Of a stretch of DNA of 41,710 bases, positions 16,701 through 40,571 are shown one piece after another. Both the position numbers and the translations under genes were made by a program. The notes under the pieces were generated by a model. That model searched no databases, was not told the DNA's origin, and was given only the letters and a program-made list of their open reading frames with translations. Every line of letters starts with the position of its first letter. The stretch's first letter is position 1. This stretch comes from Intoshia linei (Eukaryota; Animalia; Orthonectida): assembly GCA_001642005.1 (NCBI GenBank), contig LWCA01000192.1, positions 1-41,710 of the forward strand. The letters are read 5' to 3'.

Positions 16701-19700
16701 CTGCATTTTTATATATAAGATATTAAATAATTTAATAAACGTTTATATATTATAGCTAGTAATTTTGTATCTAAAATGTGCATTGTAGTTATTATAATTG
16801 TATACTATCTATAAATATCTTTAATTGAGATGCTCCATTTCCAAATTATTTTTACGGAATTTAGGCTAATTTTTACCAAATCGTTAGAATTGATCAAATA
16901 CATATTGTAGATAAATAAATTTTAGACTAAACTGAATTAGTATTGATTCATAGTTATGATTATTGATCATAGTTATGTAACTCATAGTTAACTCGAAAGA
17001 AACTAAAGTGTTAATACTTATTTTATCTTAATTCCCAAGTAAGTGTGAATTTTTGTTTATTATTTTTTATTAATCTATAAAATTCTATTTTTAATTTTTT
17101 TCTTCCAACCATTTTTCAATTGATTAAAAATTTACTATAAAATCCCGTTTTAAAATATTGTTAAAACCTATCATTTACTATTTGAAACATTAATGTATAT
17201 AATTAAAATGTTAAGAATATACTTTTAAAATTAATTTAATGTCATTTTATTTATTGTTAGTGGGTACATTTCATATACAATATAGTTATATTTTTTTTTT
17301 AAAATTATTTATATATAGTGTTTTACGATCTTTCAAGTCATGTTTGCATAGAGTCGAGTCATGTTTGCACTTAATGAAGTCAATACAGGACTTCATAATA
17401 TAGCAATTTTACATGTAAATTATTCCATTTAAAGTTTAATTTAAATTATATATTTTATTATTTCCATCTTAAACAAATATTTTATTTAAATATACAGGGA
17501 ACAAAACTTATTTTACTGTTTATATCATACATCAATTAATATTTGATTTAATTTGCAAATTAAAATAAACAAATTTCTTAATTACCTACCACCGTATTCG
17601 CCATTTTTGAATCCAATCGATGATGTATTCTCAGTATGGAAGAATATTATCAAAAGAGCGTGTGTCCATAAAGAAATGCAACTTAAAGAAAAAATAACCA
17701 ACTCATTTGAAGAAATATCATCCGTGCATTGTGATAGTTTTTATAGGAAAATGCTACCCTATTTGATAAAATGCGAACGACATGAAATTATTAATGATTA
17801 AACATTTCCTTGCTATTTTATTCTTAAATACGTAGTTAAAATCTATATAAAGTGTACTAATAGAAATGTTAATCATACATTAAAAATTTAAACTAATTAT
17901 CGAAAAATGTGCAATTAATAATTTTATCATGAAAATAAATTTTTACGAATATATTGTGAAAGATTAATTTAACTTGTGCTTTTTAAGAACGACTTAAAAG
18001 TTTGTTAAACAAAAAATATCTAATAAATTTTGGTATATAATGGAATCTCTGTATTGACCATATTCATTGAAAAGATGACTTGAAAGATCGTAAAATTCTA
18101 TATTATGGGATTTTAAATTATACAATATAGCCAGTAAATATAAAAAATAAATCAATATTAAACACAATGACGTTATTAATTTACCCAATAATCCATGTAT
18201 TATGCAACTACCCGTATACTAATTTATTTAGAATGTAAATTTTATTATATTTAACGGTCACTAACGGAAACCTCCATTGTTATATAAAAAATGTTAAAGG
18301 GTATTAATCTTATATACTTCCAAATATGTTCATTTATTTTTTGAATAGTTAGTAAATAACACTAATCATCAATCTCGTAAAATATACTAACTATTATTAC
18401 AATTATATATTTCTCGCGTTAAAACTTATAAGTCAAATTTTATTTTCGTAAGGAAACTACGCGATTTAATGAAAATTATTGAATTTTGTAGAATAATACA
18501 TATAATATAATATGTATAATCTAAACATTAATTTATCAGATTGTAAATTTAAATTAATGTACATTGTACAATGTACTCCAATAATACATATTTTACGTTA
18601 TAGTATGAATACAATTTTACAGGTCTAAACTATTCTTAATCCTTTGTTGACGAATGTATGAAATTTAATACAGTGCATCTTTTATAAATTTACGGAGTAC
18701 CAGAACTTTAAAATTCATAATATTAAGTGGATATCATAAAGTTAAATGTTAGCGGAATAATTAAAATTTAATTGTATCCAAAAATCACTTAATAAATACG
18801 CCAATCATTAATAAAGACCTTGATTTTGTAAATATTAACTAAAAATATATAATCTTTATTAACATACAATGAATTGGAAATATTAAATAAAAAAAAATAC
18901 TGTATTGTTAGAAAGATTTAAATTGTATTTTCCATTAAACACAATTTTGAAAATGATGTATTAATGATATTAAAAATTTGGTATTAGGTATTTATCAAAT
19001 TTTATACATTCGTCATCTACAATATAAAATAAACTTTAAATAACGTTGATAAGATTTAATTTACAACAAAATTTTTATTACATTTTATATATTTTTCAAT
19101 AATAATTTATTTTGATAAAAATGACATACCATTAAAAAAATTATATAAAAAATAGTGGAAAAAAGGGAAAGGACCATTAATAGAGTTATCTATCCATAAA
19201 AACAAAGAAAATAAAAACTATGCAATCCTATAGATCATTTCAATTGTTTTTTGACTCATGACATGTTTGAAGAGACAGTGAAACAGTCAATTTATTATAC
19301 TACACAATGTGGTTCAATGTTTGTAGCCACTGTTGCAGAAATATACATTTTTTTGGAATCATTTTAAAAATGGGTGTTATCCCATTGCCGCGCTATAGAA
19401 TGTATTGGTCGGCCGAATTTACCGTTGGCAATATATCTCATTGTATGACCCGGGATCGGTTCGAAGACATAAAAAAATACTTGCATTTTGCAAAAAATGC
19501 ATAGCTAGTGACAGACAAAAATAATCCAAAAATTGACCGCTTATATAAAATATCTAAAATTCTTGAAATGTTCAGAAATGCATGTTTTACTTCACCCCTA
19601 AATTCAAATGATGGCATAATGAATAATTTTTATATATATTCGAGAAATCCACGAAAAGTAGACAAATCTTGTGGAAATAATTCTGGGGACGTAGTGGTAC

Positions 19701-22700
19701 ATTTATTTCAATCGTTGAATAAAATTAATCATATTTTGTGTTTTGATAATTACTTTAATTCATACGTCCTCTAGCAGTTTCTAGTAAAATAAAAAATTGA
19801 TTCTGTTGGTACAATGCGAAAGAATAGAATGCAACGAGCTCCTGTGATGGACGATAAAGTAATTAAAAAAAAATGTAGATGAACTATGGACTATGCTTTC
19901 AACAATAACAAAAAATCCATGTTGTTAAATGGCATGACAACGTTTTTATAAATGTTTTAATATGTAAATTCTACAATTGTGGCTAGAATTTACTCGAAAA
20001 ATTATTATATAGTAACTAGGTTGACTTTTAGTACTACGTACAAACAACACCTAGCTCTGCCGATGCACACTTTTATTTTACCAAAAAAATAAATTCATGT
20101 TGAAAATCTAACTTAAAAATTCTAATATTCACTATTATTAATCCTTTAAGGGAGTGCTTCCAAAACTTATTTCAGATGGAACCGTCATATCACATTGCTT
20201 TTCACTTTAAAGTGAATTACTCTATCTTAATGTTTTTTGTTAAGATTTGTGTTAAGAATTTTAAAAACAATTTGTATCCCATTTTTTTAGAAGTTTATTC
20301 CCAATTTATTAGACAGAATGTGTATATAATATTAAAAATGAATTCCCAAGGAATGAATATATAGATTTTCACCCATATTTATTTATTGGAAATTTTTTTT
20401 GAAATTATAGGAACAATATTTACATTTTAAATTTTTATTTTAATCGAAATATTTAAAAACTATTGGTTGATAATATATTCAAAATTATTTTTCACCGGGA
20501 ATGGGTAGATTTCAGGGGTTAAAATTTTCTATTTATATCAACTGGAATAAGCTATATCAGAATAATTTTTTTTTTAATTTTCGAACCTTTAATTATTTGA
20601 CGTTTTTTGTTTTAATAAAATATTTCGGAAAAAAAATATATGAATACTAAAATGCTTTTTTGACCGTGAAGTCGTCACTTGTCCAATTGAAAATTTTGGG
20701 GTGTGTTAACAAAATATAATTGTACCACTTGTAAATTTTTTTAAATTCTAGAGCTGTTTTTATAAAAAACGGGTAATGTGTGGTTTTGGTTCTGAAGATA
20801 TAATTTTTTTAAATTTAAATTTACAATAATGTTTAAAATTTTAAAATCTGTATCAGTGTATTTATTTTTTTAAATTCTCCAACTCGTTTGATTTTCAAAA
20901 AAAAGGGAATTGGGGTTTTTGTCCCGTAAGATGCGAGTTTGGGAGATCTTATTATATGTCCCAAATAAAAACTGTAATTGAAATAAGGACTTTATAAAAT
21001 TCTAAGACTGGTAGTTATTAAATAAAGTGGAACATACACAAACAAATATTGCGTAGAATATTATATAAGTAAGGATATGAATATATTTTTTCATCTTACG
21101 GTACGGCCTTATCAATTTTAAATTATTGGAATGTGGCCTTATGTATGAAATGGGTTTCTCACCCCTAGGTTAGTGTATTAAATTTTCTTTTTGAAGTTAC
21201 ATTTTTCGGAACTCATTGTTAAACCATAGAGAAAAGGTCATTATGAAAATAAATTTTTATAAAATGTATTGATTAGATCCGAGTAATTTACTTTAATATA
21301 TTATATGATATACTTTATAATATAAATGACATTTTTTGAAAATTAAATTTGTTAGATATAATATAATAATAATAATTACAATTTATAATTTTATAAAATT
21401 TAGTTCATGGTATATATATTAATTCAGTGTTTCCCAATCTTTTTTAAACTACGCCCTTTTATGTTCTTAATGAAACGAATGATTATATTCACTGCATCGA
21501 TTTTTTATTTTTTATTATTACAAATTACTATTATAGTTAAACCTGTCTACTGTGGACCGTAAAATTGAGTTGTTACAACAATTTTCATTGTAGTAAAGTT
21601 AGCAATTTTCATTGTTATGTTGAAAAATTTGTCAAAAACTATATTCATTGTCATATCCAATGGATAATCCATGGATTATCCACTGTAGACAAGTTGAAAA
21701 TTCTATTGTAAAATTTGTATTTACATTGAAATCATGATAGGAAATAATTTTAAAATCAATTTTCCTCTATAACAATTTCTACTTTATTCAAGTTGCACTA
21801 TAATAATGTATCAAAAATTTAAATTTTTTCCATAAAATGTAAAAATTACCTGTTGGGATTCACTACGGTCATTTGTTTACTTTAATATAAATTAAAAAAA
21901 TTGAATATTAGATAGTAATTTTTAATTTCAACAATATCAATATTGTTTAAATTTAGCAATTGAAAATGTAATTTAAATTCTAAAATATTTACTTAGCCAG
22001 TAATATTTAAATTTTTGAACTATAATTTAAATATTGGCAATACAGTCCAATCTATATAGAGATGAAAACAATCTCATAAATTGGGATCGTTATGCTTTAG
22101 ATATTGTCAGGTTAGATTACCGGATTGCTATCATAACTTTACTGACGGTTCTTTAGACTTTTGACTCTTTTGATGACTCAGATACACTAGCTCAAATTCA
22201 TAACCTAAACTGATTTACGTTTGACATATAACGAAACCAACATCTACATGCCATTACCAATCGAAGTTGACTCTTATCAATTGTACCTAATTAATACTAT
22301 CAAACCGTAACGCAATTATTTACCTATTTTTACCTAGAAGTTTTTTCGTAAATTTTTTTCGTATTGATTCAATGGTGATTCAGTTAGCGTTAAAGTGTAA
22401 GCGTGTTTTAAATTACAGGACAGAAGTATATGTTATTACTATAGATATAAAGTTTTACATGGGGAGTGGGCCTCACAATATTATTACTCATCAATTACCT
22501 CAAAATGATGACAGAAATCATATCAACATACCTATTACAGTTAATTCCCTGAAAAATTATTTTAATGGCGAATTTGTAACAATAAATATCGTTAAGGTAG
22601 CGATTCGCAAGAAAATTTAAAAAGTTTCAATTTTAGTTATCCATTATTTTTGGAATATACTTAATAGAATATAATTCTTGTATAAATCAATCACGTCATA

Positions 22701-25700
22701 TTAATTTTTATATATTGATAAGAATGTAGTCGACAATTACCAATATTCAATATCAATGTTTTGATGTAGATGTAGAAGTAGTGAGTTAATATATAACCGT
22801 ATTATAAGAACCGCCTTAGAAAAAACGTCTTAACGATATATACTGTATATTATTGAATTTATTTATATTTGCATTAAATAAATACACAATTTATTTAATT
22901 TTATTTTAGTAAGTAAATGATATTCGATATTTGAATATTTACATTTACATTACAAAGATGCATACAGTGAATGTTTAAATTTTATGGCTAATGGGTGCTT
23001 AGAGAGAATTTGAATTTAGATATTATCATATAAATATTATGTAGTATTATACTTTAATTAATTCAAGTAATGTGATAATGTTTTTGATTTTTGAAGTTGA
23101 CTATAAAAACATCACTTTCACCCCGGTCTAATTTATATAAATATAATAAAAATTTAGTTCGTAAATAAATATTAATAAGTTAAAGATTACAACAATCTAC
23201 TAATGCTTAAATTCTGTTAAATCTGCTATGTTAATATATTTCAATTTATAAATATGTATTTATGATTATTAAAAATTTAATAAAACTTTTATAATATTAA
23301 TTAATTTGTAAAATTACATAATATTGGTATAATTAAGGAGGTATATTATTTTTTAAAATATATTAATATAATATATTATTACGTGCTTACATAGTATATA
23401 ATATATAATATATATAATAAATATAAAATTAGTTAGTAAATAATAAAATATACATATACATAATAGGACTTAATTATAGTATTAATATATATATAAAATA
23501 TTATCGATTAATTTGTAATGTTTAGTGTGTAATAATTTTTGAATTTCAATTTCTATGCAATAAATTAACCATTACATGAAAGTATCACTTTCTACTTTTA
23601 TCTCATTTCTAAAATTTAAAAATGTTAAATTTAATGTTGAAATAAAAATAATGTAACTAGTTGGTAAATTAGAAATAATTATTAATATAAAATATTAAAT
23701 TGAGATTATGATATAATATTTATCAAAATCAGCTGGTAATGTTAAAATATTAATTTTTTATTTTTCATTTTTAAATTAATTTTTTTTTGATTCAAAAAGT
23801 TGGTAACTATAATAAATAATACAATAAATATATTAAGGTAAGGACCGGAGAGTTAACAGTGGACTTAGTTCAAATGAAAATTGTATATACATTAAGACAT
23901 AGATCGGCAATCATTAGTCCACATATTGATTTTGGTCGCTCTTTGAATAAATATGTACATTATTTGTTTTTCAATTTTTAAACACCGTTTTAAAAATTTT
24001 CTACTATAATTGGCTCACTATACTCATTTTTATTCTGAATTTTTAGATTGCCCTGGATATTATTTTGTTGAATATACTGGAACCGTTTCTCTCCGTAGCA
24101 CTAGTTAAAATTGAGATGTATCATGTGTAAATTTTCTAAAACGGGACCAGTCGATTTTTTGATATAAAAAAGTGACCCACCAAACGCAAAATGTTGCCGA
24201 TCCCTGTACTGTGGTGTATTTCGAAAACGTTGTCATTGGTAACATATTTAGATTGAATTTGTAAAAGTTGTATTAAGAACCCAACACCAATAAAATTTAT
24301 ATTAACACGAAGTCTCTCACGCATTTTTTATAATTTCATTCAAAAATATTAGAGAAAAGTTAAAAATGAACTTTATTATATTAAATAGTGAAATATGGTA
24401 GTTACTAAGCGTTAACCTTTTGAAGTAAAATAAGATTCGTCTAACCGTTAGACTCTAATGGTTATAATCTAACCATAAGTAAAATTAAATTATATGGGAA
24501 AAAGGAAACATGTCATGGTGAGGGGTTTTTTGAACTAAATTAAAAATATTTGTATCATTCCGCTGCAAATTAAATGATTATCATCATTCACCAATTCTTT
24601 TTTATAACTCAAAACAACCAAAAGTGGAATTGACCTAAAGTAAATTGTATGAAAAATGTTGTTACAATTAAATATTTGAAGTTTACATTGTAAATAAAGT
24701 TTTAAAACGTTTAAAAAACATTTCACTGTCATTCATAAAATATAAATATAATTTTTAAAGCTGGTAAATGATTTTATTTGTTATTATTGATAAATTTTTA
24801 TTAATGAAATGTTAAATTAACATTTAAATATTAACAAATATTAAAAATTAACATTTCATTATTATTTATATATTGGATAAACATCATATTTAATAGCTTG
24901 TAATATTTTATTTGAATCACAATATATATATGAAATTTTAGCTTCATTGACATGATTATAATGACAGATACCAGAATTTACTAAATTTTCAATTTGATCT
25001 ATTTAACTGAAGTCTAGTCTATACTAGAGTGTTTAACTTTTGTAAAAAGTACTGAGTTATTTATTAAGTATACATTATTATGTACTTAGTTTTATTTTTA
25101 CTGAGTTATTGGATTTTTTAAAAATTCAGTACAGTACTGTACTTGGATGAATAAGCTTATTTTTAAAATTTTTAATTTTGCAAATCATATTGCATCAGTT
25201 GAAAGATTATTTTCTGCGGTGAGATTATTCAAGTCTATTCTTAAATTAGGATTACGACATAATTAATTGAAACTGAATTTTAAAATTGAATAAAAACTTC
25301 ATGTCTACAAAAAGTAATTTATAATTAATTTTTTGTTAATAAATAATTTAATTATCTACTTTTAATGATACTATATATATTATAGTTTCTAATAAAATTT
25401 TAATATTATCTTTTTCTAAATATCAGTTATTTATTTATTATAAATAATATAATTTATTTCTATCTAAAATCAGAAACATTTATTGTATTTAATTTTTTTA
25501 CATCTTGTAAACGAAAACTGAAAATTTAACAAATTTTTAAAGTACTTTTACTAAAATTTGAAAAAAAAAAATTTTACTGAATTTTTATTTTTTAAAACTA
25601 ATTACTTACTTAATTTTTAAAAAAACTAAGTTGAACACACTAATCTATACTTAAAGACTATTTCATTTTGTCTGTGTATTGTTATTATATTTTATATGAA

Positions 25701-28700
25701 TCCAATTCTGATAGTTAGTAATCCAATACAAAAATTTATATAATATACTATATCATATTGTATATGCAATGTTAGGATTGTTAATGTTAGAATATTAAGT
25801 TGCATATAAAAAGGACCGATGATGTGATGATGAATGACGATTAAATATGATGATTGTCGCACAAACGTCCTTAAAAATAAAAACTTGTCTGTTTATTTGC
25901 GATATCACTAAATAATAACGGAAACAAGATTTACCCATAATTACCAATTAATAATTATAATTGAACACTGAATTTATTGAGGCGCTCATTAAATGCACAT
26001 ACAATGTAATACATTTATTGCAAAAATATCATTTAAAACTAAAAATTACGTTTAGACGGTAAATAGACTTATGATATTTAAATATAAATTAAACGGACAA
26101 TAAAATTAAAATTCACATATTTTATATTACTAATATATTAAATTCTTAGATGGTAAGTGTTAACGTTACCATTAATTGTAGTAAATATAAATAAACAGTG
26201 TCATATAAAATTGAATTTAATTTTTAGTGTGTAATTTGAATTATTAAAATTTAATAAACTACCAAATGAAATGTTAAATTGAAACATCCAACCTATTAAT
26301 CTAAATTTATTTAGTTTATAGTAATATTTAAATTAAAAAATTTTATTAGTGATTTATATGTTGTTAATTTAACGTTACTTTTAGACGGTATATTCAATAT
26401 TCCATAGGACAATAAGTTATTGTCAATAACATTTATTTAAATTATTAATCTGAAAATTAAATTTTAGACAGAAAACGTAAGATAGATTAATAATTATTAT
26501 TTTAATGATAAACTAATGTATTTCATTGCAGATAGTAAGAAACATATAAAATTAATCAAATCATCATAACATTAATATAGTTGGTAAATAATATATATTA
26601 GTATACAATTTTATAATAATAGATTATAATATATTTAAATTAAAATTTTTTAGAACGTAATGTATACATATTTCGTTATATATTTACAAAATATTTGATG
26701 ATTTCAACTGTTATTGATTACATTATTATTTTTTATAGTTGGTAATACACATTTATTTAACAATTAATAAAATAATACATTTTTAGCATGTAATACTAGA
26801 TGAAGATGCATGATTTATTCATGAATATAACATTGATTTAAAGCAGGGTGGTCCAAAGACGTGTCGAGTGAGGGCCAAAAAATTTAAAATTTTCGCGGAT
26901 CGTAATTTTGAAATATTTTTAAAATAATAATTTATTAATTCTTTTGCCTTAGTTTGATGTTCTAATTCAAATTTATAAAGCGGTTTTCTCCAATGCATTG
27001 CTCATTTTCATTCCATAAATAATTAATAAAGTTTATTGACATGCTCATTCACTTTTCATTGATAATTGCAGCTATATCGCTGCCTGGCCACATTTTTTGG
27101 ATCACTGTGATTTAAATGATAATTAGATTGAAAATATTTTTTATTATTATAAATGTAAACGTTTTGATATTTTAGACTGTAAATCGAAATTTATTCACAC
27201 TGACTTTGTAAATAAATTAATTTGTATTATAGTTGGTTATTTTAATTTTTAAAATGAACTACATTAAATTTAAATTTTTTTCAAATTTAAAATGGTATTG
27301 TATAGCATGTAATTATAATTAATATAATTATATTTTACTTTTAATGTCATTTAAATTATTTTTTATTATTTTATATTACACGTATTTAAGGTTATTTTAA
27401 TATTTGATATAATAGTTGGTATTTTTAAACAATATTACTATATATTCTTTTTATAATATTTCTAATTTTATTTATCCAGAAATTATGAGTAATCTAATTA
27501 ATAATGTTCATTGCAAATATTATAATTCTATCATTATAAATTCGAGCTAGGAACATAATACCCTCAACAAAAACCGTTTTAATCAAGTGATAATTGTACT
27601 TGAACATATATATTAAATATAAATTAAAAAAATTTTGACAAAAATGAAAACTAAACAGTCTAAACAATTTTAAAATAAATCTTAAAATGTATTATACTAG
27701 TGTGAATATATTTTAATCGATTGACTTTAATAATTTAATACAAATGAAAATTTGATTTCATGAATATTATATGTATTTACTAAATGTTAATACAAATGTA
27801 TATAAGGAAATTATAAAATCAATTAGAAAATAATTTCATTCCTATAAAAATCCCCCAGGTTGAATCTCTGCTTTAAATTAACGTAGAAAATTTATGAATC
27901 ATAATCATTATGATATTGAAAAATATAATATTTTTGTAACAATATTATAATTTATATAGCTAGTAAGAATATTGTCTATTTACTATTTACTAACATTTAA
28001 ATATAGTATTTATAATAATAATTATTATACATGATATTATATTATTATGAATTATAATTCAACTTTAATTTCAAAATTTTAATTTAAATTCATTTTTATA
28101 GGCAGTAATCATTAAAATGACAGTTAAGCCTCCACTATTAGCCAAAATAAAGAATTCAACTAAATTTTTTGGCGAATATTGGATATAAATTAACGTAAAA
28201 TAATATATCAATTAAATTTAGTAAGTAAATTTAAAATATATTATATAATTAATAGTAACTATGAGCGATTAAAATTAAAATTTTAAATCACTTGATTATA
28301 ATCATGATCAAGTTGATATCCTTTTATTTTTCTTATAAAGCAACCTCCAGTTTTTTCACATGTTTCATGATCTTTCGTGGTATCCCACTTGAAAATATTA
28401 TACTAACAGGTTAAAAATTATATATAATGATAATTTTAAATTTAAAGTAAACTGTACCATTTTACTGTAATAAGAATAAAAATATCAAATTATTAATTTT
28501 AGAAAAGAGTAAAATTTATTTACATTTAAAATCATCTAAAATAAATGTATTATCACAATTTAATTTAATCAATTGATAGAAAGTAACAATACATTTTATC
28601 AACAATTGACAAGAGATGATTTGTCATTCAATTAAAATTTTTTTAATAGAATGTAATAAAAACATAAATATAAAATATAATTATAAACAAGATAATTCTT

Positions 28701-31700
28701 CATCCACAAAGTTTTCTACGATAAAAAAAAAAAAAAAAAAANNNNNNNNNNNNNNNNAAAAAATCAATTTATGAAATTTTTACCCATATCTCTTTTTGAA
28801 AACGAGTAGACGTTTAATGCAATTTTTTTTAATTGTAGGATGAATATTTACATATTCATTATTAATTTTTATCATGCCATTTGAAAAATATAGTTTGATA
28901 ATATATTAAAAGTTATTTTACATCGGGAATACGTATATTTCTGAGATTAAATTTTTGTATCTTTATCAACTGGACTAAGCTATATCAGATCAATCTTCTT
29001 TTTTTAATTGTAGGACTGTTAATTATTTCAAATTGTTTGTTTTAATAAAATAGTTTCGAAATAAAAAAAATGAATACTAAAGTGGCTTTTTGACCTCTCT
29101 TCTCTTGATCTTTTTAAAATTCTAGGATTATTTTCATTGTTTAAAAAAAGCGTAATCTTGGTTTTGATATAAGTATTTAATTAATATCGTAGTCGGTAAT
29201 TCACTTAATTAAATTACTGTAGTGTACTGTCATAATTATCAATTTAAATTTTATTTAGCTTGTTATGTGAATAATTATTCATTTCTTTTATAAAAGATGG
29301 TATTTTATTTTTTAAATTAGTTCAATTCAATTTAATATTATATACTACATGTAGTCGTGTGTAAATTTATTTGAAATTTATTGTAATTATGAATAGGGTG
29401 TTCAGCTGATATTATTACACAAGCTGTTAATTAATCATTTTAGTCTGTAATTATTTTTTTATTTGTACATTATACGATAAAGTAGAATCTACATTGTAAA
29501 TGTAGATCAACGGTCTCTAATAAATTTGTTTTGTGATATCAACACAAAAATCAAATTTTTACGCCTATTATTTTTCTCGAACATTTTAAATTTTATTTTT
29601 GTGATATTTTTCATACTTTTTTAAAAAAATTCTCGATAAAATTAAAGGTTAATTACATAGATAATTGCGTATGTTTAATATTCATGATTTAATTTTTTAT
29701 TTCGTTAGTTGGTATTTATGCATAACAACTTTAACATATTTAATAAATAACTCTTAATATTTAATATTTTAGCTTGTAAATTTAAAGTTAATATAATAAT
29801 GTTTTGTACATTGTGCAATGTACAGTGTAATACAGATATACAGATTTTGTATACTAATTTTAAAAAAGCAGTTGGTAACATTTTTATTAGCTATTAAAAT
29901 TATAAAAATTAATGATATAATATTTTATGACATGGTATAATAAATTTTAAAATAATAGTGAGTAATGTTTTATTATTAAATTAATATAATTATTACTACT
30001 AAATGTTAAATTATAATTAAAAATTAAATACACACATAAACTGTATGTATAATTAAACTTTACCTATTATATTTCAGTCGGTAATTTTTTAATTTTATTT
30101 CATATTTATTAAATTAATGAAAAATTAAATTATATAAACCGAAATAATAATAATAATAAATTATTTTATATAAAAAAAATTATAGAAGGTAAAATCATCG
30201 TCTTTAATCATTGGATCCGCAGATCCTACCGTTTGCTATAAGCTTTTTATTAATGTAAAAAGTTTATTTAAAATATGTTGGAATATTTAAGTTTGGATTT
30301 AAATTTAAATTTGTAATTTTTACATGTCATTTAAAGTTGAAATCTGGATCTGAAAATAATTGTATTTCATACAGAATTTTCGTGAGTCAAGTTTATGTAA
30401 AAACTAAGTGGGAAGTCTTTGTATAATTTACCAGTACATTAGATTTAATTGTTAACATTGTTTTATTTTAGAAATTTGTAATTTTTATTTTTAGATTTTG
30501 TACCTAGTGTCGAACATACCGTACCCTCGACCCTCCTCGGATGGATAATTTTATTTTGTAAAATGTAAAAATGGAGCCTGATTTTACCAAAACTATCCTT
30601 GAATACCATAACCATTTTGTTTGTTACGTTTAAAATGTTAACCTTATAGCTCTATAGAGGTGGCTAAGGGCTATATAACACTACAAATTGTTTGTGATTT
30701 TTTTGTTAGGCATATTTTTCATTTTTAATGGCCGACAGCTGGCTAGATTCGCTTCTATTGTACCTTATGTTTTATTATTTAAAATAGTGAAGATAAGTAA
30801 ATATCACCATATGATTATTATATTTATCCAGAATTATGTGCACATATAAATTATTTTTTCAGTTATAATTTTAATTATGCATAATCAAATTTATACTTTA
30901 AGTCGATATTCATAAATTACGGTGGAACTTATAATATTATTCTTAATTTAGTTCAAAGTAAGTTTTGAAATTCTATTTTAATTATAAGCAGTCATTTATT
31001 ATATTTTAATATTTAGAAATATTAACTAAAGGTACACTAATTGCATTTTATATAAATTTATAATTTTTTAGTGGATGATAATAAAGGTAAATATAAATTT
31101 AATGATATGTAATACACATTGTGTATGATAAAGTGTTTAAATAATTTGAAACATTTTGTCATTTCCAATGACTCAATTACGCCGAGAACGTGACAGAGTC
31201 AATGCTAATTTGTTTTATAACTATGTAAAACTGTCCTCTTAAAATCAAATTATTGTTGTATTAATATATTTATTTTAGTAGGTAGTGATTATACATTTTA
31301 ATTTATGGCTTGTGTGTTTAAACCAGTGTTTCCCAACCCATTTTGCGTTATCGGCCATTTTTTAGAATTTTATTAAATATATTATTTTTATCGCCAAGTA
31401 AAAATAAAATTTTAATTTTGAAAGTAACGTTATATTATAGTATATATTTTATGCATGAACAAATAGATTTATTTTTTTTTCAACTAAATCAATTTTTCAC
31501 CAACAGTATGATCTTTTCCGCCTTTTGCGATAAGATGCCATTAATCCATTTTTATTTGATCATAAAATTATAATAATTGTAAAAATTTTATATTTATCGT
31601 CATATCTTTAGTATATTATAACTAGGGCGATTATTTTTTTAACTAGGGCAAATTTTGATATGTTCATAGACATCAAATTAAATCAACAACCTTAAAAACT

Positions 31701-34700
31701 TACATTTTCGAGTTTAATTCCTAAATTTCCAGTTTTTTAAAAATGAAAAAAGTCACAGAATTTTATAAAATATAAATTCTGGGTAGTTTTTAAAATCGTG
31801 AGTATCATAAATTACAACTTCAAAAACTTAAAATCAAATAAAAAGTGGCCCTCGATATAGCAACTGCTGTTTGCAGTATTGAATCTATTGTACTCCGAGG
31901 TACCTCTTCTGGAGTCTAGGCAAAAAATTTTTAAAATGGGAGCCTCATTTTTTCAAATTAAATATTAAAAAAAAATATCTTTGAATATTATAATTATTTT
32001 GTGTGTTAAATTTAAAATATAAAGTCAAGATCTTTAGAGAGGTTGGTAAGTACAATATGACACAAGCCATCGTTTTCGAAACAAATTTTTTATGGGCCTA
32101 CTTTTCATTTTGTAGGTGACCTCGAATTGGATAGGTTCGGATCAGGCTGTTTGTGCCAAGTACATAACAGTAAACTTTACTAGAGTTAGCGTGACTAAAC
32201 CAAGCTATTAATATTAATAATATTGTTCAAAATTAATATTAAATCAATCTAAAGTATTTATAATTCCAATCAATTCGTGAAATTTCCCTGGTCATTTCAA
32301 AATATCGCAGATTCCATCAAATTTTCGATGACCCACAAGTGGGTCTAAACCCACGATTGGGAAACACTGGTTTAGGGTACGTAATGATTCAATTAAATTA
32401 GTATACTAATTGGTAATTGTAGTTACTGAAAAATCAATACTTGTATCAATTCTATTTTAGAAAACTTGGAAAACGGTAAATTAAATTTTCTGTAAATTAC
32501 TATAAATTATGTCAAATATTTCATATTTCAATTTAGAAAGTTGGGATAACGGTAATAATATTAATTTATAACATAAAATTGAGATGAATGTGATTTTAAT
32601 CGTCCTGTATTCCAGTAAAATCATATTTCCGATCACTAGTTCTACTTGAGAAATAAAGAATTGAGAGGGCCTAGAAATTTAAAAATTAATGATGTATAAT
32701 ATACATCATATATCAATCATACATCAATATGCTTAAGATTTAATTACAAAGTGTTGGTCAAAGATATGTAATTCATACCCTAAACTCGAAAAAAAAGCTA
32801 TTGTATTTTTCTTACTTTTCGCATGAACGTATTAAAATATATAAATGTATATGAATGTGGATTTTACTCTAGGGAAATTTTTTTAGCCATATTTTGAAGG
32901 GGGTTTTTAAAGATATTTTTTTAACCATATTTTCAAGTGGTATTTTGTGGAAATTGAAGAAGTCACTTATTCAGATTGAAATTTTTTATGTGTCTTAACA
33001 GGATATAACTACTATCTGCAATTTTTTTTAAATTAGGGTTGTTTTCATTTTAAAAAAAAAAAATGTGGGGTTTTGATCGTAAAAATTATCATTAAATTAA
33101 ATCGTTAAATATACATTTATTGACCAAATTTTTAATATTTAATTTAGGCATGAATGAAATACGTAAATATAATAATCATTATAATAATAACAACGTTGAC
33201 TTTTATGTACTACATAGTACGTACAAACATCACCTAGCTCTGACGAGGGCACATTTTTATTCTACCAAAAAAAGAAATTCACGTTGAAAATCTATTTAAA
33301 AATCCTACTATTCACTATTATCTATCCTTTAAATGAGTTGTTTCCAAATTTGTTTCAGGTAAAACCTGGTTAGAATTGACTTTATTCTATAATAACGAAA
33401 AATATATATTCTTAAATACATATTTTTCAAAATGACAATATTAGATAGAATTTTTCTAATGGAATAAAAATACCTAAAATGATTAATATATCAATTTAGA
33501 GGAAATTAACGAAAGTAAATATATAAATTTATGATATAAATTGAAATTAATCTAAACTTGTCAAATATGTCAAAAAAATCATATCAAAACTCACAACTTT
33601 TGAGTCAGATGACGAATTCGGTAGTGAAAATTTTTTGAACGTTTTAAATCGATTGTATGTTTTATCCACCTAATAAATATATTACATTGCCCTAAATCTG
33701 ATTTATAATTTTTAGAGGTGTTTTTCTAATAATATTTTTAAATCACACCCAACATTTCTGATTCGTGATTGTTAAAATTTTTACATTGGAAACTTTGAGA
33801 ATGTGTTTATACAAATTTTATAGGAAAATAAAAAATTTTAACCAATTAAAGAGAAAATACTGTATTTTTAGTTTCAAACTACTTACAAAACATTACCGCA
33901 GGATTTTTTCTTTAGCATATATTACATAATTAATAAATTTAGATATAATTTTGATTAGTAAATTATCATAACTTGATATTGTATATAATATTTTATAAAG
34001 TATATTTAATAGAATAATTATACAATCATTTTTATTATATTTAAATTATTCTTATATTAATTTTAAAAGACTGTAATAATTCAATTTGATTTTCGTGATA
34101 ATTATTATTACTATGAATGCTCAATTTAACAAACACAACGTTACCTGAATTTTATGTTAATTTAAAATTTTAAAGAAGTTTAAGTACATTCCCAAATTTT
34201 AAAAAAGTTAAGGTATGTCTGTTTAATGTATCCTTTTATTTAAAATAATTAAAAATCCATTAGAGATACATTAATTGATAAGGATAAAGGTTATAATATA
34301 TAATAATATATTATAACCTCATAACAATAGTAGAGTCTTAAAGAAAAGAGATATAATACTTTTTTATTTTTTTTTACTTTTATACTTTTATAATATTTAT
34401 TTTTAATGAAGAGTTAAAAAAGGGATGAAGGTTAAACTTTATCCCGCTAATGTTCTCAAAATAAACATGTTTTTAGATTATTGTTTACAGAACATTACAA
34501 CTTACTCTATATTTTATTAAATCAAAAAAAAATCTAATAATATATTATTATCTATCATCCCTGCGAAAATAAATATTTTATAACCGTTGGTTGATGTTTC
34601 GAAAAATCATGAATATTAAAAGATTTTTTATATCATTTTCAATTTGAAATTTAAAGCTTTTGTTTTATTACTAAAAACTTGGCTTGGTCATAAAGTATTT

Positions 34701-37700
34701 TCCATCAAATGTATAATATTGTCATTGAAAATAATATAAATTACTATACTGGGGTGACTGTATTAATATAATAAAAACAAATGCTCCTAAAATGGAACAA
34801 TGGAGGTTTCCCAGTAAGTTTTTACAATTATGTTTACATTTACAATTATTTTGAATTTGAAAAATGTAATATTTCCGTACAAAATTATCAAATGTTTGTG
34901 TTGATTAAATTGAGGGTTGACTGTATTTATCTAAACTAATTAATTATGAAAAATCGTAAAATTCAGATACTAATTTAAGACACATAGCAAGTAAAATTAT
35001 ATTTAATATTATAAAATTTATGTATGATGAGACATCATTTGATGCGTAAAATTTCATTAAGTCGTAAAAAATTGGAATGTATGCTTTCTTGTGCGCGTAA
35101 ACATTGGATTTAATTGCATGGTTCAAAAATAAAAAAAATTTATTATTAATAATTTTGTACGAATATATTTTTACTGAGTTATACAATGGCAAAAGTGTAT
35201 CCATAATAATCTATATTATTGATAGATTATATATAAAAGCAAACTTTGATAAAATTACCATAGGAATAGAGAAGTCAATAAGTCAATGGCTTAATTTTCT
35301 ATACATCTTAAACTTATTGATGAAAAATTTGTTTTTTTATTACTTTTAATACTTTTTATTATTGCTTTTTTGGCTTTCTTTGGCTAATACATAATTGGTA
35401 TTTTTAAGTATTTATTAAATTGTACTGAATATATATTATCACTATAGGAGACTAAAAAGAGCACTTTTGAAATGATAAAACACGTATAAAAATAATAAAA
35501 TGTATGATACTAATTTTAATGATCATTCATTATAGCTAAGTGCATTATCTTTATGACATAATCGTGCTAAAACTGTGTTTTTTATATTTTAATTATATTT
35601 GAAATTGTTAAAAAACATTCATCAATGACATGTCATATCATTTTAGTGTAAAATAATATTTTGATCGCTTTACTCGTTTGTGTCTACTCTGATTATCACA
35701 TTGAAAATGACAAAATAGGTTTTTATAATTTTATTTTTCTGTTATTTATGCATAATTAATAAATATAATAATATAATAAATCAAATTATCAAATTTTCTA
35801 TGCCCAAAAATGAACAAATCAGACTCGTTAGTGCTTAACGCCATTTTATTTATTACATGTACTATATGTAATAATAATATGTAATAAGTATGTATGTTTA
35901 ATTACATTAAATATTTTTATTTGTCGTTCCAATTTTACAGTCTTCGGTTTTTGGAAACACTACCACGTACTGTACATTTATTCACTTTTAAAACAAATTG
36001 TTTTGTATTATTCTTTTTTAATCGTACTTTTTTATAGAAAAAGTTGCATTAAGTCAATTTTTTTTTAGAGTCAATAAAAAATTTGCCCTAATTATAATAT
36101 AATTATATATTGTTTTCACTGTTTAAATTACCAATATTATCAATTTATGTTATCTTTCTTAACGACTACAAACAGCATATCAAAATATTATTTGTATTTT
36201 CACGCTTTTAATTAATTAATTAGAGTTTTTTATACATAGTATATGAAATAGTACAGATATACAAAGTATATAAATGTATATAAAAATAACAATTGTTTTT
36301 ATTATAATTATATTATTTAAATATCCTTATTAAAGTCAGTAAGTTGTAAATAAAGTTAAGTTATAGTACAATCAATTACATTGATACATTTAGAAAGTAA
36401 ATATTTTGAAATTCATACAAATACGTATGCAAGTATATATAAACCAGTAAGTGTATGATCAAATTAAAAATTTAAATATATATTCTAGTTAGTAATAAAT
36501 TAAAATACATCAATAAATTGAACATTATATCAATTACATACATACAGTGCGCGTAATAAACATAGGAAACCCCGATTTATATTATTTTTTGGTCTATTAA
36601 CATTAATTTTCATGAATATTTCATCTCCATTAAAAAAGGAATTTAAAAAGTACGCTTGTTGATACCATTATTTTTCTTCTGCCACCTTTATATGAAAAGT
36701 TATCACACAAATCGCTAATTAGCCGCGCAATAAACATAGGCACCTTAAATTAAAATAATTTGTCTTTTCTCCTTTATTGACCACAACTTCTAGGCATCTA
36801 TTTTTCATTGTCAATACTAACTTTTCAATAGTATCTATATGGATATTTTTCCATTCTGTCAATATTATTTGCGTCAGCTGATACCTATTTTTAAATTGCC
36901 TGCCATTTTTGTATAAGGACCTTGCCAAAATTCCCCATAAGTTTTCTATTGGGTTAAGGTCAGGAGACTTCGATGGCCAGTTTATTACATTAACAGAATG
37001 TTCTTCAAACCATGTTTTAACAATACAAGAAGTGTGGATTGGAGCATTATCTTGTTGAAAAATGTAATTTGTACCATAATGAAAGTGAGCAAATGGAAGT
37101 AGAAATTCAAATAAGGTAAAAATATAATCCTCAGAGTTTTGATTTTTATTCAGAATCGCCAATTTGGATTTGCCTTTCTATGAAAATGCTCCCCAGACTA
37201 TTACCGATCCACCTCCACTTTGCCGCGTAAAGTAAACTTCTTTTTCCTTTCGTAGATCATGCCAATAAAACTGGAATTCATCAGGACCGTTTGATCAAAT
37301 CAGTCCAAATTGAATTTTTTTTTATCCGAGAATATCACAGAATTTTAATGTGTATCCAAATCCACGTATTTTCTGACAAAAAAAATCTTATTTTCTTTAT
37401 GAGCTTTTGAAAGGACCAGAGCATGATGTCGTTTACTCCATTGAAGGTGGGAACAATTACTTATTACCTGTTGAACGGTACAGAGCTTCACGTCTAATTC
37501 TGCATTTTGCATAATGTTTCTAGCTGTATATTGACCGCTTAAAGCCTCACGTATAATATGAAACTCCGTTCTTGAAGTAAGTTTCTTGGGCCTACCTGGA
37601 CTTTTTGACTTTCCATATGACTCTGGGTTGTGTATAAACCTCGATACCACATTTCTAGACCTTTTAATCTGCTTAGCAATGTATTTGTGTGATTTATTTA

Positions 37701-40571
37701 TTGTTTTTAATGCCATAATTTGACCTTTTTCAAAATCAGTTAAAAATACAACAAGCGTACTTTTTAATTCCTTTTTTAATAGAAATGAAATATTCATTAA
37801 AATTAATGTTAATAGACCAAAAAATAATATAAATCGGGGTGTCCTATGTTTATTGCGCGCAATGTATATTAAAAATATGTATAAATATAATAATATGTAT
37901 AAAATGGTTTTAATATGTGTTGTTACGATTCTAAGGAATCGTAAATCACTGAAATCGCTCGATGTTAGGAACCCGGAATCAGTAAAAAAATAACGCTTAC
38001 GTTTCTTTGGGAAATACGATAGTAATTAGTTTAAAAAAACTAAGTTTTTTTAAAATTAGATAAACTTGCTCAATATTATTTTTTTAATTTATTATGTATT
38101 TATATCATAAATAGTACATAACTTGGCATATAATGAGGAATTAAATTACATACTATTATAATTATGTATATATAATAAATAATATATATAAATAATAATT
38201 ATGTTATTATCTTATATATAAAATGAAGAGCTTTTTTTCCTGTCTAATGTATATACTATCTACAATGTATATTATACATACAATTATATTATTTTTATAA
38301 GTATACTATAAAATTTTTATTGTTAAAATACCATATAGTGCGTAATTTTTAAACTTATTTTATACATATAGTGGATCCACTATTAACCGCTGATTCCGTT
38401 ATTCACTAAAAAAACTAGTACTTTTGATTTTTAGTTTTTTTGTATAAAATTTTTACTTTTAATTTTTATTTTTTTTATATAAAACCTCCGTTATTCGCCA
38501 GTTTCCACTGTTCGATAAAAAATTTTTCAAATTAATCGAAAAAATAAAATAAATTGTATTTGCAAACCGCGAGTATATAGAAAAAATGTTAATATATCAT
38601 GATCTTTAAATTTGAAGAATTATATAACTTGTGATATGTGAATAAAATACCGTTTTCACTATTAACAACAGTAAAATTCATCTTTATAATGATATAAATA
38701 TGTATACTAAATTGATAAACATTTTCATAAAAACTGGGTCTATTATTCTCCAAAAATTGTGCATCCAGATTTAGGCAAATTCTGAAGGCTTCACTAAACA
38801 GACTAATTCGTCAATAATTATCTATAGTCTCTATATCAGTGCTTCCCAAACTATTTATGTTCATGGCGCAAAAAAATAAGTAAAAAATTGCGGCGCACTG
38901 TATACATTGCCTATATTTCTATCTTTAAAAATGTGTATTATCACAGTTGTTCTCAAACGTTTTTAATAAGGGTTCCCGTCAAATGCAATAATTATTAATT
39001 TTTTTATGATGAAAATTTTGAAAGATGATAATAATTACCGAAAAAAAATATTTTACACTTTGTTTTAGTGTATTTATAAAACGTATGTACTTTATGCATT
39101 AAAATTTAATGATTAGATAGACATTTTTATAATTTTAAATTATAGATCGTTAAAATAAATAATCAAAATTTAAAAAAAAACACAGATTCAGGTGCCGGCG
39201 CACCATTTGGAAGCACTGCTCCATATATACATATATACTGTATACTTTATAATATAGTACAGAGTTTATATTATATAATTATAATTTATATACGTTTTAT
39301 TTAGGATTAGGTATTTTATTTATTTTAAATAAATTCTCATACAATTGACAATCATCTTATATGTAGTTAGTAATTAAAAATATGTTACAATTTATTATAC
39401 GTTTTTAAAAAAAATGTAATTACATTGGACTACGATTATGTCAATGTACCATGAATTGAAATTGAATTTGAATGAGCCATTAAAAAATGGTTATGTGCTG
39501 GAAATCAATTTAAATCGTTTTCCATTTGGCAAAACGTTTTAAAAGTGATTATACTGTGTAAATTTTAAAGGAAGCTTTTGTAAGTTTTCACATATAAATA
39601 AATTTTTTATTTTGGGGTGTTTACCTGCACAAATAATCGTCAACTAAACATATTTTTCAAGTAACTTTCTATGAAAGAGGAGGGAATATCAATTTAATTG
39701 AATTAAGATTGCATAAAATAAAAATCGACTGTCAAAGGTTTATTTTTCATTTTTTTCGTAGTCTTTTGGAGAAATTTGATATTATATTTCTGTATTATAG
39801 TTAGTAATTTAATATATTTTAAAATTAATAACATTAGTATGTAACTAAATTATAATATTATATTTATATTATATTTATTATTATTATAAATGTAGATGGT
39901 TATTAAATTAATATTTATAATAATATTTATTTATGAAAAATGATAATAATCAAAAACAGTTGGTATATTATTTATGTTAACAGATTTAATTATGTATTAC
40001 AATTTATAATTATAATTAAAAAAGTATCACTGTCAAGTTACACCTTTCATGATTAAACATTCTGTTCATCATTATTCATTATACCCTACCATAAAAAATA
40101 GCACAATTAAAATTTTTATTATATTCAAATTTAGAAAATTTAACATATTATTAAGATTTCATGATTAAATAAAAATTCAACCTTTGAACTTTCGGAACAT
40201 AAAAAAATATAATTTAATTATAAATATATAAAAATATTATTTAATTAACTAAAATTATGAATAAATCTGTATTATATTGAATATGTAAATATGTATTAAG
40301 TTTCTAGAAATTTTATAACATATACGTATAAAAAATTACATTTTTAAAGGAAGTAATAAAAACTATAATTATAAATTATTTAAAATATACCAGACAAGTT
40401 TTATTTTTAAATATTAGTATGTAAATTGCTCAATTTCATTTAATGATATATTAATATTATATGTGAAAATACTTTTAGTCAGTAATATTTTGTTTATATT
40501 ATTATATTATATTATAATATAAATATTTACTTATAAGTTTTGGATATATCATAATAATTATTAAATAGTTT
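5155..40571 (+). CDS. Putative micro-exon gene (~105 symmetric phase-1 exons of 3/6/9/15 nt) encoding a multi-hydrophobic-segment protein of unknown family; 5' and 3' ends not defined
   Basis: Repeated (t/c/a)ag-NNN-gta(a) motifs on the + strand with AT-rich upstream tracts. The concatenation of ~468 nt is open in phase 1 and has stops in phases 0 and 2. The product has alternating hydrophobic and charged blocks. Confidence 0.8.
6330..6639 (+). repeat. 3' fragment of Helitron-like dispersed family
   Basis: Shares ttagattttcaacgtgaatttatttt...ctcggcagagctagg...acagtcaacctagt with the other copies; has an internal partial duplication. Confidence 0.65.
7251..8009 (+). mobile_element. Internally deleted hAT transposon with C-terminal dimerisation-domain ORF (7536-7832)
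   Basis: TIR tagtgcgaccata / tatggtcgcacta; flanking direct repeat gtttata(t); ORF motif CSNTYIERVFS..W...KSNLSLKTL. Confidence 0.85.
9640..10270 (+). repeat. Copy of Helitron-like dispersed family
   Basis: Collinear with 10880-11461 and with the reverse complement of 20013-21090; ends tcaacctagt. Confidence 0.7.
10880..11461 (+). repeat. Copy of Helitron-like dispersed family
   Basis: Ends in the hairpin ctaggtgctgtttgtac-gta-gtacataacagtcaacctag followed by T; no TIR or TSD seen. Confidence 0.7.
11752..18542 (+). CDS. Micro-exon block 2 (NKNIFLIFITIAMAKFN)
   Basis: 3-nt exons: 11752 ATA, 12785 AGA, 14289 ACA, 14435 TTT, 15242 TCC, 15343 TTA, 15480 TTT, 16343 TCA, 16414 TAA, 16559 CGA, 16656 TAG, 16756 CTA, 17261 TGG, 18131 CCA, 18232 AAT, 18349 TTA, 18540 ATT. 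Confidence 0.7.
12043..12716. mobile_element. hAT MITE
   Basis: TIR caggcgtgtcaaact / agtttgacatgactg; subterminal gcggccc motifs; TSD ctgtacat/ctgtaaat. Confidence 0.8.
15594..16109. mobile_element. Tc1/mariner-pogo type MITE
   Basis: TIR cagtagaatctccttaat / attaaagagattctactg with TA on both sides. Confidence 0.8.
16117..16257. mobile_element. Small foldback MITE
   Basis: ~40-bp inverted repeat agaaaaatacgtactatcacttttagtttatttgg / ccaaataaactaaaattgatagtacgtattttttct; a related terminus lies at ~14957. Confidence 0.65.
17316..18100 (+). mobile_element. Deleted IS630/Tc1/mariner element with DDE C-terminal fragment (17553-17801)
   Basis: TIR tagtgttttacgatctttcaagtcat / atgacttgaaagatcgtaaaattcta, TA TSD; motif YLPPYSPFLNPIDDVFSVWK. 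Confidence 0.88.
19200..19945 (+). pseudogene. piggyBac-type transposase relic
   Basis: Motifs YRMYWS, MTRDRFEDIKKYLHF, DRLYKI, FDNYFNS, GTMRKNR (~19808) and KWHDN (~19927), interrupted by stops and frameshifts. Confidence 0.88.
20013..21090 (-). repeat. Longest copy of Helitron-like family (reverse orientation)
   Basis: Begins actaggttgac (reverse complement of gtcaacctagt). It contains segments matching ~500-870, ~5530-5930, ~28760-29165 and ~32960-33360. Confidence 0.7.
21277..24899 (+). CDS. Micro-exon block 3 (YPIHDT[NVEVV]IIRVMFAV[VKY]AA)
   Basis: 21277 ATCCGA, 21404 TTCATG, 21912 ATA, 21997 CCA, [22770 15 nt, uncertain], 22910 TAA, 23158 TTC, 23338 GAG, 23433 TTA, 23526 TGT, 23661 TTG, 23733 CTG, 23800 TTG, [24389 9 nt, uncertain], 24761 CTG, 24897 CTT. 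Confidence 0.7.
25025..25642 (+). mobile_element. Non-autonomous hAT element
   Basis: TIR tagagtgtttaactt / aagttgaacacacta; TSD gtctatac/atctatac; remnant ASVERLFSA at ~25190. Confidence 0.8.
26056..28582 (+). CDS. Micro-exon block 4 (YDVFYNDRKHIELAYFAFEIMTSIKKK)
   Basis: 26056 ACG, 26150 ATG, 26228 TGT, 26315 TTTATA, 26385 ACG, 26468 ACAGAAAAC, 26532 ATA, 26581 TTG, 26654 AAC, 26739 TTG, 26787 CAT, 27176 ACT, 27233 TTG, 27306 CAT, 27416 TTG, 27480 AAATTATGA, 27960 CTA, 28102 GCA, 28222 TAA, 28503 AAAAGA, 28580 AAA. Confidence 0.8.
26844..27107. mobile_element. Degenerate hAT-like MITE
   Basis: Imperfect TIR cagggtggtccaaa / tttggatcactg; TSD unclear. Confidence 0.45.
28743..28757. other. 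Assembly gap (N run) after poly-A
   Basis: Run of n; additional micro-exons could be missing here. Confidence 0.99.
29193..34072 (+). CDS. Micro-exon block 5 (IAYVVFFAFVIEEILKIIQKILTKVDDNKVENLENESWDNEEINENIILIN)
   Basis: 29193 TCG, 29259 CTT, 29297 ATG, 29355 TCGTGT, 29444 TCT, 29709 TTG, 29773 CTT, 29872 TTG, 29959 TGA, 30078 TCG, 30186 AAG, 30472 AAATTT, 30788 TGAAGATAA, 30952 TTCAAA; 15-nt exons at 31017 and 31072; 31279 TAG; 15-nt exons at 32461, 32537, 33500 and 33943; 34070 ACT. Confidence 0.8.
31324..32369. mobile_element. hAT non-autonomous element
   Basis: TIR cagtgtttcccaa / ttgggaaacactg; partial TSD gttta. Confidence 0.7.
36336..40571 (+). CDS. Micro-exon block 6 (FKIIMRLVRSFFIYVGIFI)
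   Basis: 36336 TCA, 36394 AAA, 36448 TAA (weak donor), 36489 TTA, 38339 TGC, 39305 GATTAG, 39367 TTA, 39571 GAAGCTTTT, 39801 TTA, 39838 TAT, 39896 ATG, 39960 TTG, 40350 GAA, 40418 TAT, 40479 TCA, 40569 TTT. Confidence 0.72.
36545..37864 (-). mobile_element. Near full-length Tc1 (DD34E) transposon, transposase disrupted
   Basis: ~115-bp TIRs beginning cagtgcgcgtaataaacatagga, TA TSD. ORF 37345-37797 has HTH and GRPKKLT; VIFSD and VWGAFS lie between the ORFs; ORF 36719-37162 has QQDNAPIH..SPDLNPIENLW, with 34 residues between D and E. Frameshifts and one stop are present. Confidence 0.95.
38837..39218. mobile_element. hAT MITE
   Basis: TIR cagtgcttcccaaa / tttggaagcactg; TSD ctctatat/ctccatat. 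Confidence 0.8.

Follow-up and report, generated by a model that had tools for sequence, protein, structure and literature searches.

Contig LWCA01000192.1 of the orthonectid Intoshia linei (assembly GCA_001642005.1) is 41,710 nucleotides (nt) long, and this whole stretch of DNA, read on its forward (+) strand, is referred to below as the window. At 26056-26789, over 734 bases of the + strand, it contains a cluster of 11 units, in each of which a splice acceptor, a tiny exon of 3, 6 or 9 nt and a splice donor directly follow one another. We propose, with a probability of roughly three in four, that these units are genuine symmetric micro-exons, constitutively joined, and that they belong to a single + strand protein-coding gene, which would extend from about position 4069 to at least 40571. 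A preliminary description of the window, made from its letters alone, had already interpreted the cluster as a series of micro-exons. This interpretation is supported by the match of the units to the genome's own splice consensus, by a zone of AG exclusion upstream of the acceptors, by the uniqueness of the spacers, and by a reading frame that is set by a candidate first exon.

The cluster, the array and their splice signals

The cluster had been described as 11 micro-exons in 734 base pairs (bp), separated by introns of 45-90 nt, and each unit was recovered at its position, with introns of 45-91 nt. The acceptor is tag in all units but one, where it is cag, and the donor is gta throughout. 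From 5' to 3' on the + strand, the exons are ACG at 26056-26058 (tag/ACG/gtaaat, splice score 4.6), ATG at 26150-26152 (tag/ATG/gtaagt, splice score 5.4), TGT at 26228-26230 (7.2), the 6-nt exon TTTATA at 26315-26320 (4.8), a second ACG at 26385-26387 with the weaker donor gtatat (2.3), the 9-nt exon ACAGAAAAC at 26468-26476 (2.2), ATA at 26532-26534, which has the cag acceptor (2.2), TTG at 26581-26583 (6.8), AAC at 26654-26656 (9.1), another TTG at 26739-26741 (5.8) and CAT at 26787-26789 (6.2). Eight of the 11 units passed a stringent splice score. The ten short introns that lie between them (26059-26786, + strand) all have the form GTA..YAG, with 3' ends free of AG and with unstructured, unique sequence. 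In order, they measure 91, 75, 84, 64, 80, 55, 46, 70, 82 and 45 nt.

The spacers had also been claimed to be non-repetitive, and this was borne out. No tandem repeat at the unit period was detected in the window with Tandem Repeats Finder, the short introns of the gene (n=39) were no more alike in pairwise local alignments than shuffled sequence, and a DNA search of the whole genome found the cluster to be single-copy. A tandem repeat was rejected as an explanation on the results of Tandem Repeats Finder and of the intron alignments.

The DNA of the last two exons of the cluster is confirmed in a second public run. This independent run from 2024, which belongs to a different study, carries DNA identical to the assembly over 26708-26876, and the sequence is therefore not a quirk of the assembly. 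Another observation concerns a Logan contig of one public run, which covers 25549-26221 with 4 differences in 673 nt, and which may come from the source sample of the assembly itself. This contig differs from the assembly at 25716 and 26058, in both cases inside a candidate 3-nt exon (TTA to TAA and ACG to ACA, respectively). These variants may reflect an elevated polymorphism in micro-exons, or chance.

The cluster is part of a much longer array, which occupies 5155-40571 on the + strand and has introns ranging from 34 nt to 2.9 kb. The window contains 29 matches to the strict pattern TTAGNNNGTAA, where 2.9 would be expected; every one of them lies on the + strand, and none of 100 shuffles reached this count. 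With the more permissive pattern YAG-NNN-GTA[AT], 77 matches were found on the + strand and 9 on the - strand. At all other spacings between 0 and 60 nt the two strands were about equal, apart from small excesses at 6 and 15 nt; the zero-length AG/GT junction showed no strand excess at all (11 vs 13, compared with 77 vs 9 at a spacing of 3). Based on the splice score, and with the antisense strand as the control, the high-confidence exons of the array comprise about 58 of 3 nt, about 9 of 6 nt and about 5 of 15 nt. The 15-nt exons occur in a + strand segment at 31072-33957, with exons at 31072, 32461, 32537, 33148, 33500 and 33943, and they encode a D/E/N-rich peptide.

Three signals that had not been used in picking the units were then available as evidence of splicing: the AG-free zone, the splice consensus and the minimum spacing. 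An AG within 20 nt upstream was found for 12% of the unit acceptors, compared with 52% of control YAGs from the same loci (p=1e-22). Further upstream the deficit becomes smaller (30%, 40% and 48%) until, at -60 to -80 nt, the control level is reached; for GA, the deficit is much weaker than for AG. In the cluster itself, the 20 nt upstream are free of AG at all 11 acceptors. As for the consensus, four true actin introns from the same genome are 30-45 nt long and follow the pattern GTAA(A/T)...(T)TAG, which the flanks of the units match. Adjacent units are never closer to each other than 34-45 nt. For comparison, the I. linei genome of 41.6 Mbp (PMC9218549) has a median intron of 57 bp (PMC6543705). 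A search for branch points returned just weak AT-rich 5-mers (TTAAT, ATTTA) as enriched, and was not decisive.

Exon lengths, stop codons and the reading frame

The window is not the only place in the genome with such an array. In a search covering 41,603,068 bases in 3520 contigs, of which the window is one entire contig, at least 11 further loci were found to carry similar arrays, and the window is one of the largest. A genome-wide search for a pattern of three units gave 26 hits, whereas the control gave 4. The strand-specific excess of 3-nt units is evident at individual loci, with ratios of 41:1 on contig C1593, 41:1 and 32:2 at two loci of C1697, 31:2 on C970, 31:1 on C1037, 26:2 on C2340 and 21:1 on C1428, and others are alike. 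Genome-wide, TTAGN3GTAA has 2404 matches and TTAGN4GTAA 2220, and because this excess is only about 8%, the class is confined to a limited number of loci.

Across 14 loci, only multiples of three were enriched among the micro-exon lengths. The counts for the array strand against the opposite strand were 259:6 for 3 nt, 29:7 for 6 nt, 14:2 for 9 nt and 19:6 for 15 nt, whereas all lengths up to 17 nt that are not multiples of three summed to 65:66.

The next evidence comes from stop codons. Stop triplets within the units of the window occur at the background rate (6 of 77), indicating that frame 0 is not the reading frame. A different picture emerges at the junctions between exons. For the window and two other loci taken together, 11, 10 and 1 stops were counted in frames 0, 1 and 2, respectively, with an expectation of 7.1 for frame 2 when the order of the units was shuffled (P=0.00125). 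Frame 2 is the phase-1 frame, where the first base of every exon is the second base of a codon. The result was replicated in ten independent loci, with 17, 18 and 7 stops and a frame 2 expectation of 15.3 (P=0.0023). When the 13 loci were pooled, there were 8 stops among 354 adjacent junctions where local block shuffles predicted about 20, and none of 5000 shuffles gave a count as low (P<0.0002). In this pooled set, junction stops amounted to 2.3% at lag 1, i.e. between adjacent units, compared with 5.8-8.3% at lags 2-7, and no depletion of stops was found in the other junction frame. Since an intron parts the two halves of every junction codon, the avoidance of stops would be explained only by selection acting on RNA that is spliced and translated.

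The same frame is obtained from the 5' end of the proposed gene. A candidate first coding exon of 79 nt lies at 4069-4147 on the + strand. It begins with an ATG, encodes a signal-peptide-like N-terminus, and ends in phase 1 at the donor GTAAAA. The N-terminus, inspected by eye and scanned for hydropathy, consists of one lysine followed by a hydrophobic core of about 12 residues. AT-rich DNA yields many hydrophobic open reading frames, a caveat that applies to this exon, and the exon has no match in Pfam. It is followed on the + strand by candidate exons 2 (45 nt, 4187-4231, after an intron of 39 nt), 3 (42 nt, 4270-4311, after an intron of 38 nt) and 4 (12 nt, 4584-4595), all of which are open in the phase-1 frame. 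The first exon and the stop test are independent sources for the phase, and they agree. A chain of exons filtered by splice score has 78 exons and 354 nt in total, with one stop in 117 codons. The cluster by itself is open in two frames, and frame 0 and the phase-1 frame are not separable from the cluster alone. The translation given for it in the preliminary description, DVFYNDRKHIELA, is the correct one for the frame in which every exon starts at codon position 2.

If the first base of each exon is the second position of a codon, the array in the window would encode mostly hydrophobic residues: among its 77 units of 3 nt, the first base is T in 42 and G in just one. The first base is more balanced in ten other loci, with 26 G and 69 T among 208 exons. 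Scans for signal peptides at the other array loci were too noisy in AT-rich DNA to be used.

The proposed gene and its alternatives

In the gene that we propose, three ordinary small exons would be followed by a coding sequence that is split into some 75 exons, the majority of exactly 3 nt. The micro-exons would without exception be in phase 1: each would open with the last two bases of one codon and close with the first base of the following codon. Since the 3-nt exons would all lie in this phase, the gene would have about one intron per codon. The introns would presumably be recognised singly, by intron definition, as expected in a genome where normal introns are 30-60 nt long. They would also have to be removed sequentially, because 3 nt cannot seat the complexes of the 3' and the 5' splice site together. 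Such an ordered removal would resemble recursive splicing, with 3 nt kept at each step. The gene is predicted to encode a small secreted protein, with about 120-150 residues that are hydrophobic at first and then acidic, and would belong to a parasite-specific class of micro-exon genes.

Several observations weigh against this proposal. In the window alone, one junction stop was found where order shuffling predicts 2.9 (P=0.14), which is not significant, so that the claim for this particular gene rests on the pooled behaviour of the class and on the gene start. Eight junction stops are left in the pooled set, and some units must therefore be false, or some exons must have been missed. Three of the 11 cluster exons (at 26385, 26468 and 26532) have canonical but weaker-scoring sites. 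No 3' end could be assigned to the gene; three candidates for a 3' terminal exon were considered, none of them convincing. The conceptual protein is of low complexity and rich in I, L, F, N and K, as AT-rich DNA would give. The public runs that match the locus, which come from two studies, consist of DNA-type contigs with no GT..AG joints, and are uninformative on expression. Finally, in the literature searched no report was found of consecutive runs of 3-nt exons, nor any experimental precedent for the splicing of dozens of them.

The micro-exons could be coding and yet optional, acting as cassettes whose stochastic or regulated skipping would generate a pool of peptides differing by single residues. 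As every exon is symmetric, any subset would keep the frame, and this is exactly the logic that micro-exon genes (MEGs) use (PMC4350168). The two run variants at 25716 and 26058 also fall within candidate micro-exons, as this idea would have it. However, skipping one exon would create the lag-2 junctions, and these show no avoidance of stops: their rate of 6.2% is like that of lags 3-7. The absence of stop avoidance at lag 2 indicates that selection has acted on the all-included form only, and we regard the cassette reading as unlikely. We consider it slightly less probable still that the splice sites are real and the RNA is non-coding, with the units serving as stepping stones for the recursive-type removal of a long intron, or belonging to a long non-coding RNA spliced by a spliceosome tuned to tiny introns. 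The architecture does resemble juxtaposed 3' and 5' splice sites, the gene would span 36 kb in a genome with true introns of 30-60 nt, and the stop avoidance in the window alone lacks significance. Nevertheless, steps of 45-91 nt would make stepping stones needless, the spacing is strictly 3 nt and never 0, and the enriched lengths are all multiples of three. The avoidance of stops at adjacent junctions is moreover frame-specific in the 13 loci, and its frame agrees with that of the hydrophobic first exon with its ATG.

The remaining explanations dispense with the protein or with the gene altogether. With a GC content of about 20%, TAG and GTA are common words, and the near-equality of the genome-wide counts for TTAGN3GTAA and TTAGN4GTAA is what an artefact of AT-rich composition, or an old diverged satellite with a splice-like core, might be expected to leave. 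Such an origin is very improbable given that no shuffle reached the observed count of strict matches, all 29 of which lie on one strand, and that the array has neither periodicity nor similarity between spacers. Neither composition nor a satellite can give an AG-exclusion zone together with a coupling of the two halves of junction codons across introns. The introns themselves might be the product, in a host gene for a cluster of mirtrons or small nucleolar RNAs in which minimal exons serve as spacers, and many introns of 45-90 nt do fall into the mirtron size class. We rejected this small-RNA host gene on the results for folding, Rfam and intron similarity, and give it next to no credence: the cluster introns fold less well than their shuffles (mean z +0.66), no Rfam family is matched anywhere in the window, the introns have no mutual similarity, and both the lengths in multiples of three and the avoidance of stops would be left unexplained. 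Constitutively joined, coding micro-exons are the explanation that we favour.

A broader claim, to which we give only a little better than even odds, is that the accurate joining of dozens of successive 3-nt exons is routine for the spliceosome of I. linei, by an obligatory ordered pathway akin to recursive splicing, and that the loci constitute a hidden class of at least 12 genes for secreted proteins, which gene predictors do not see and which grow codon-wise by tandem duplication.

Array growth and comparison with other micro-exon genes

According to the mechanism that we propose, arrays would grow by the tandem duplication of modules, each consisting of an intron and a micro-exon. One instance was observed directly on contig C1593 (7912-8358 of the fetched locus), where a module of 218 nt, composed of one intron and a CGA micro-exon, is tandemly duplicated at 99.6% identity. 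Arrays gain one codon at a time through such module duplication, as is shown at this locus. In the window, the 15-nt exons at 32461-32475 and 32537-32551 are paralogous, being identical at 11 of 15 positions and 76 nt apart, while the introns that flank them look unrelated by eye. They can be seen as older paralogues whose introns have diverged, which fits with selection on exons after the duplication of a module. A similar arrangement was noted on contig C207 (10000-19999), where three similar 15-nt exons of the AATGTCAT.. type lie at locus positions 2148, 3378 and 3892, 500-1200 nt apart, and come after a hydrophobic ATG exon at 1198-1303. This locus represents a further micro-exon gene, assembled from repeated modules of 15 nt. 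An all-against-all blastn comparison of 20 array loci revealed shared transposons only, apart from the tandem module duplication on C1593. Likewise, the DNA search of the whole genome with the cluster and the 5' exons returned dispersed repeats only, and no paralogues.

The repeats and transposon remnants of the window lie in introns of the proposed gene. The cluster had been taken as a transposon-free stretch that shows the unexpanded architecture, and this is a fair account of it: the cluster is free of repeats, and a dispersed repeat of about 260 bp (26822-27082; at least 20 copies at 66-75% identity) begins only downstream, 33 nt after the cluster and inside the next intron. Other intronic elements are a Tc1/mariner transposase remnant with Tc3 HTH and DDE_3 domains (36719-37797, - strand), a second DDE_3 fragment (17553-17801, + strand), piggyBac-type transposase fragments with DDE_Tnp_1_7 (19307-19774, + strand) and a very high-copy repeat (28814-29187), for which the summed contig depth exceeds 1000 in both public runs. 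The intron after candidate exon 3 contains a 68-bp element resembling a MITE or a SINE (4380-4447), of which the genome has at least 40 copies (84-94% identity). Elsewhere in the assembly, the mitochondrial cox1 gene (C3009:1556-2737) has 10 in-frame TGA codons, consistent with the invertebrate mitochondrial code.

The proposed gene has the structure by which a micro-exon gene is recognised, i.e. its coding region consists for the most part of tiny exons with lengths divisible by three. The MEGs of schistosomes are described as having a signal-peptide exon followed by very small symmetric exons, which account for the greater part of the coding sequence, and gene predictors miss them; they have 10-20 exons of 6-81 bp, mostly of 15 bp, with long introns of 0.1-5 kb, and are reported as restricted to flatworms (PMC4350168, PMC10526429, PMC10399815). 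Their products are reported in the same sources to be secreted, and those of one family to be hydrophobic and disordered. Both cases involve a parasite, an exon that encodes a signal peptide or resembles one, and a run of symmetric micro-exons, a likeness of gene architecture. By contrast, some three quarters of the roughly 75 exons of the gene proposed here would measure exactly 3 nt, many of its introns would be of 45-100 nt, and the organism is an orthonectid. Unlike in MEGs, the lag-2 junctions give no sign of selection for isoforms that skip exons. No literature linking orthonectids to micro-exons was found.

The bicycle genes of aphids offer a second parallel. They have many micro-exons, nearly all of their internal exons start at codon position 2, and they encode an N-terminal secretion signal (10.1101/2021.09.24.461719, 10.1101/2020.10.28.359562). 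Megacycle has more than 100 exons (118 for 2092 residues) and grew by internal tandem duplication (10.1101/2021.09.24.461719). The exons described here also start at codon position 2, many of them are micro-exons, and the arrays grow by duplication, as in megacycle. The bicycle genes differ in being hemipteran, with exons that are much longer on average and with long introns, and their CYC motifs do not occur in the conceptual peptide of the window gene, which contains no cysteine.

With respect to splicing, isolated exons of 3 nt are known from ordinary genes, human MAP4K5 being one (PMC8632122), and a spliceosome can therefore include an exon of this size. The exons of the MAP4K5 type are single and flanked by normal exons, whereas those of I. 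linei occur in consecutive runs. In the proposed gene, an acceptor is followed almost immediately by a donor, as in recursive splice sites, an arrangement that would force stepwise removal with regeneration of the 5' splice site. At the ratchet points of Drosophila, which are found in very long introns, no nucleotide separates AG from GT, and nothing is contributed to the mRNA. In the proposed gene, each step would retain exactly 3 nt (or 6, 9 or 15), and these are apparently translated.

The cluster, being repeat-free, single-copy and only 734 bp long, is a practical target for amplicon sequencing or for a minigene. Should complementary DNA confirm the proposed structure, the limiting exon size would here be the rule, with roughly one intron for every codon across some 36 kb. 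This would set a new lower bound for splicing by intron definition, and an ordered-splicing mechanism would be required. It would also mean that a set of secreted proteins is absent from the published annotation of a parasite that serves as a model of "simplified" organisation. After the MEGs of flatworms and the bicycle genes of aphids, orthonectids would be the third independent lineage that encodes secreted proteins in symmetric micro-exons of a single phase. Growth by one codon at a time would represent a new mode of protein-length evolution, perhaps one that serves diversification at the interface with the host.

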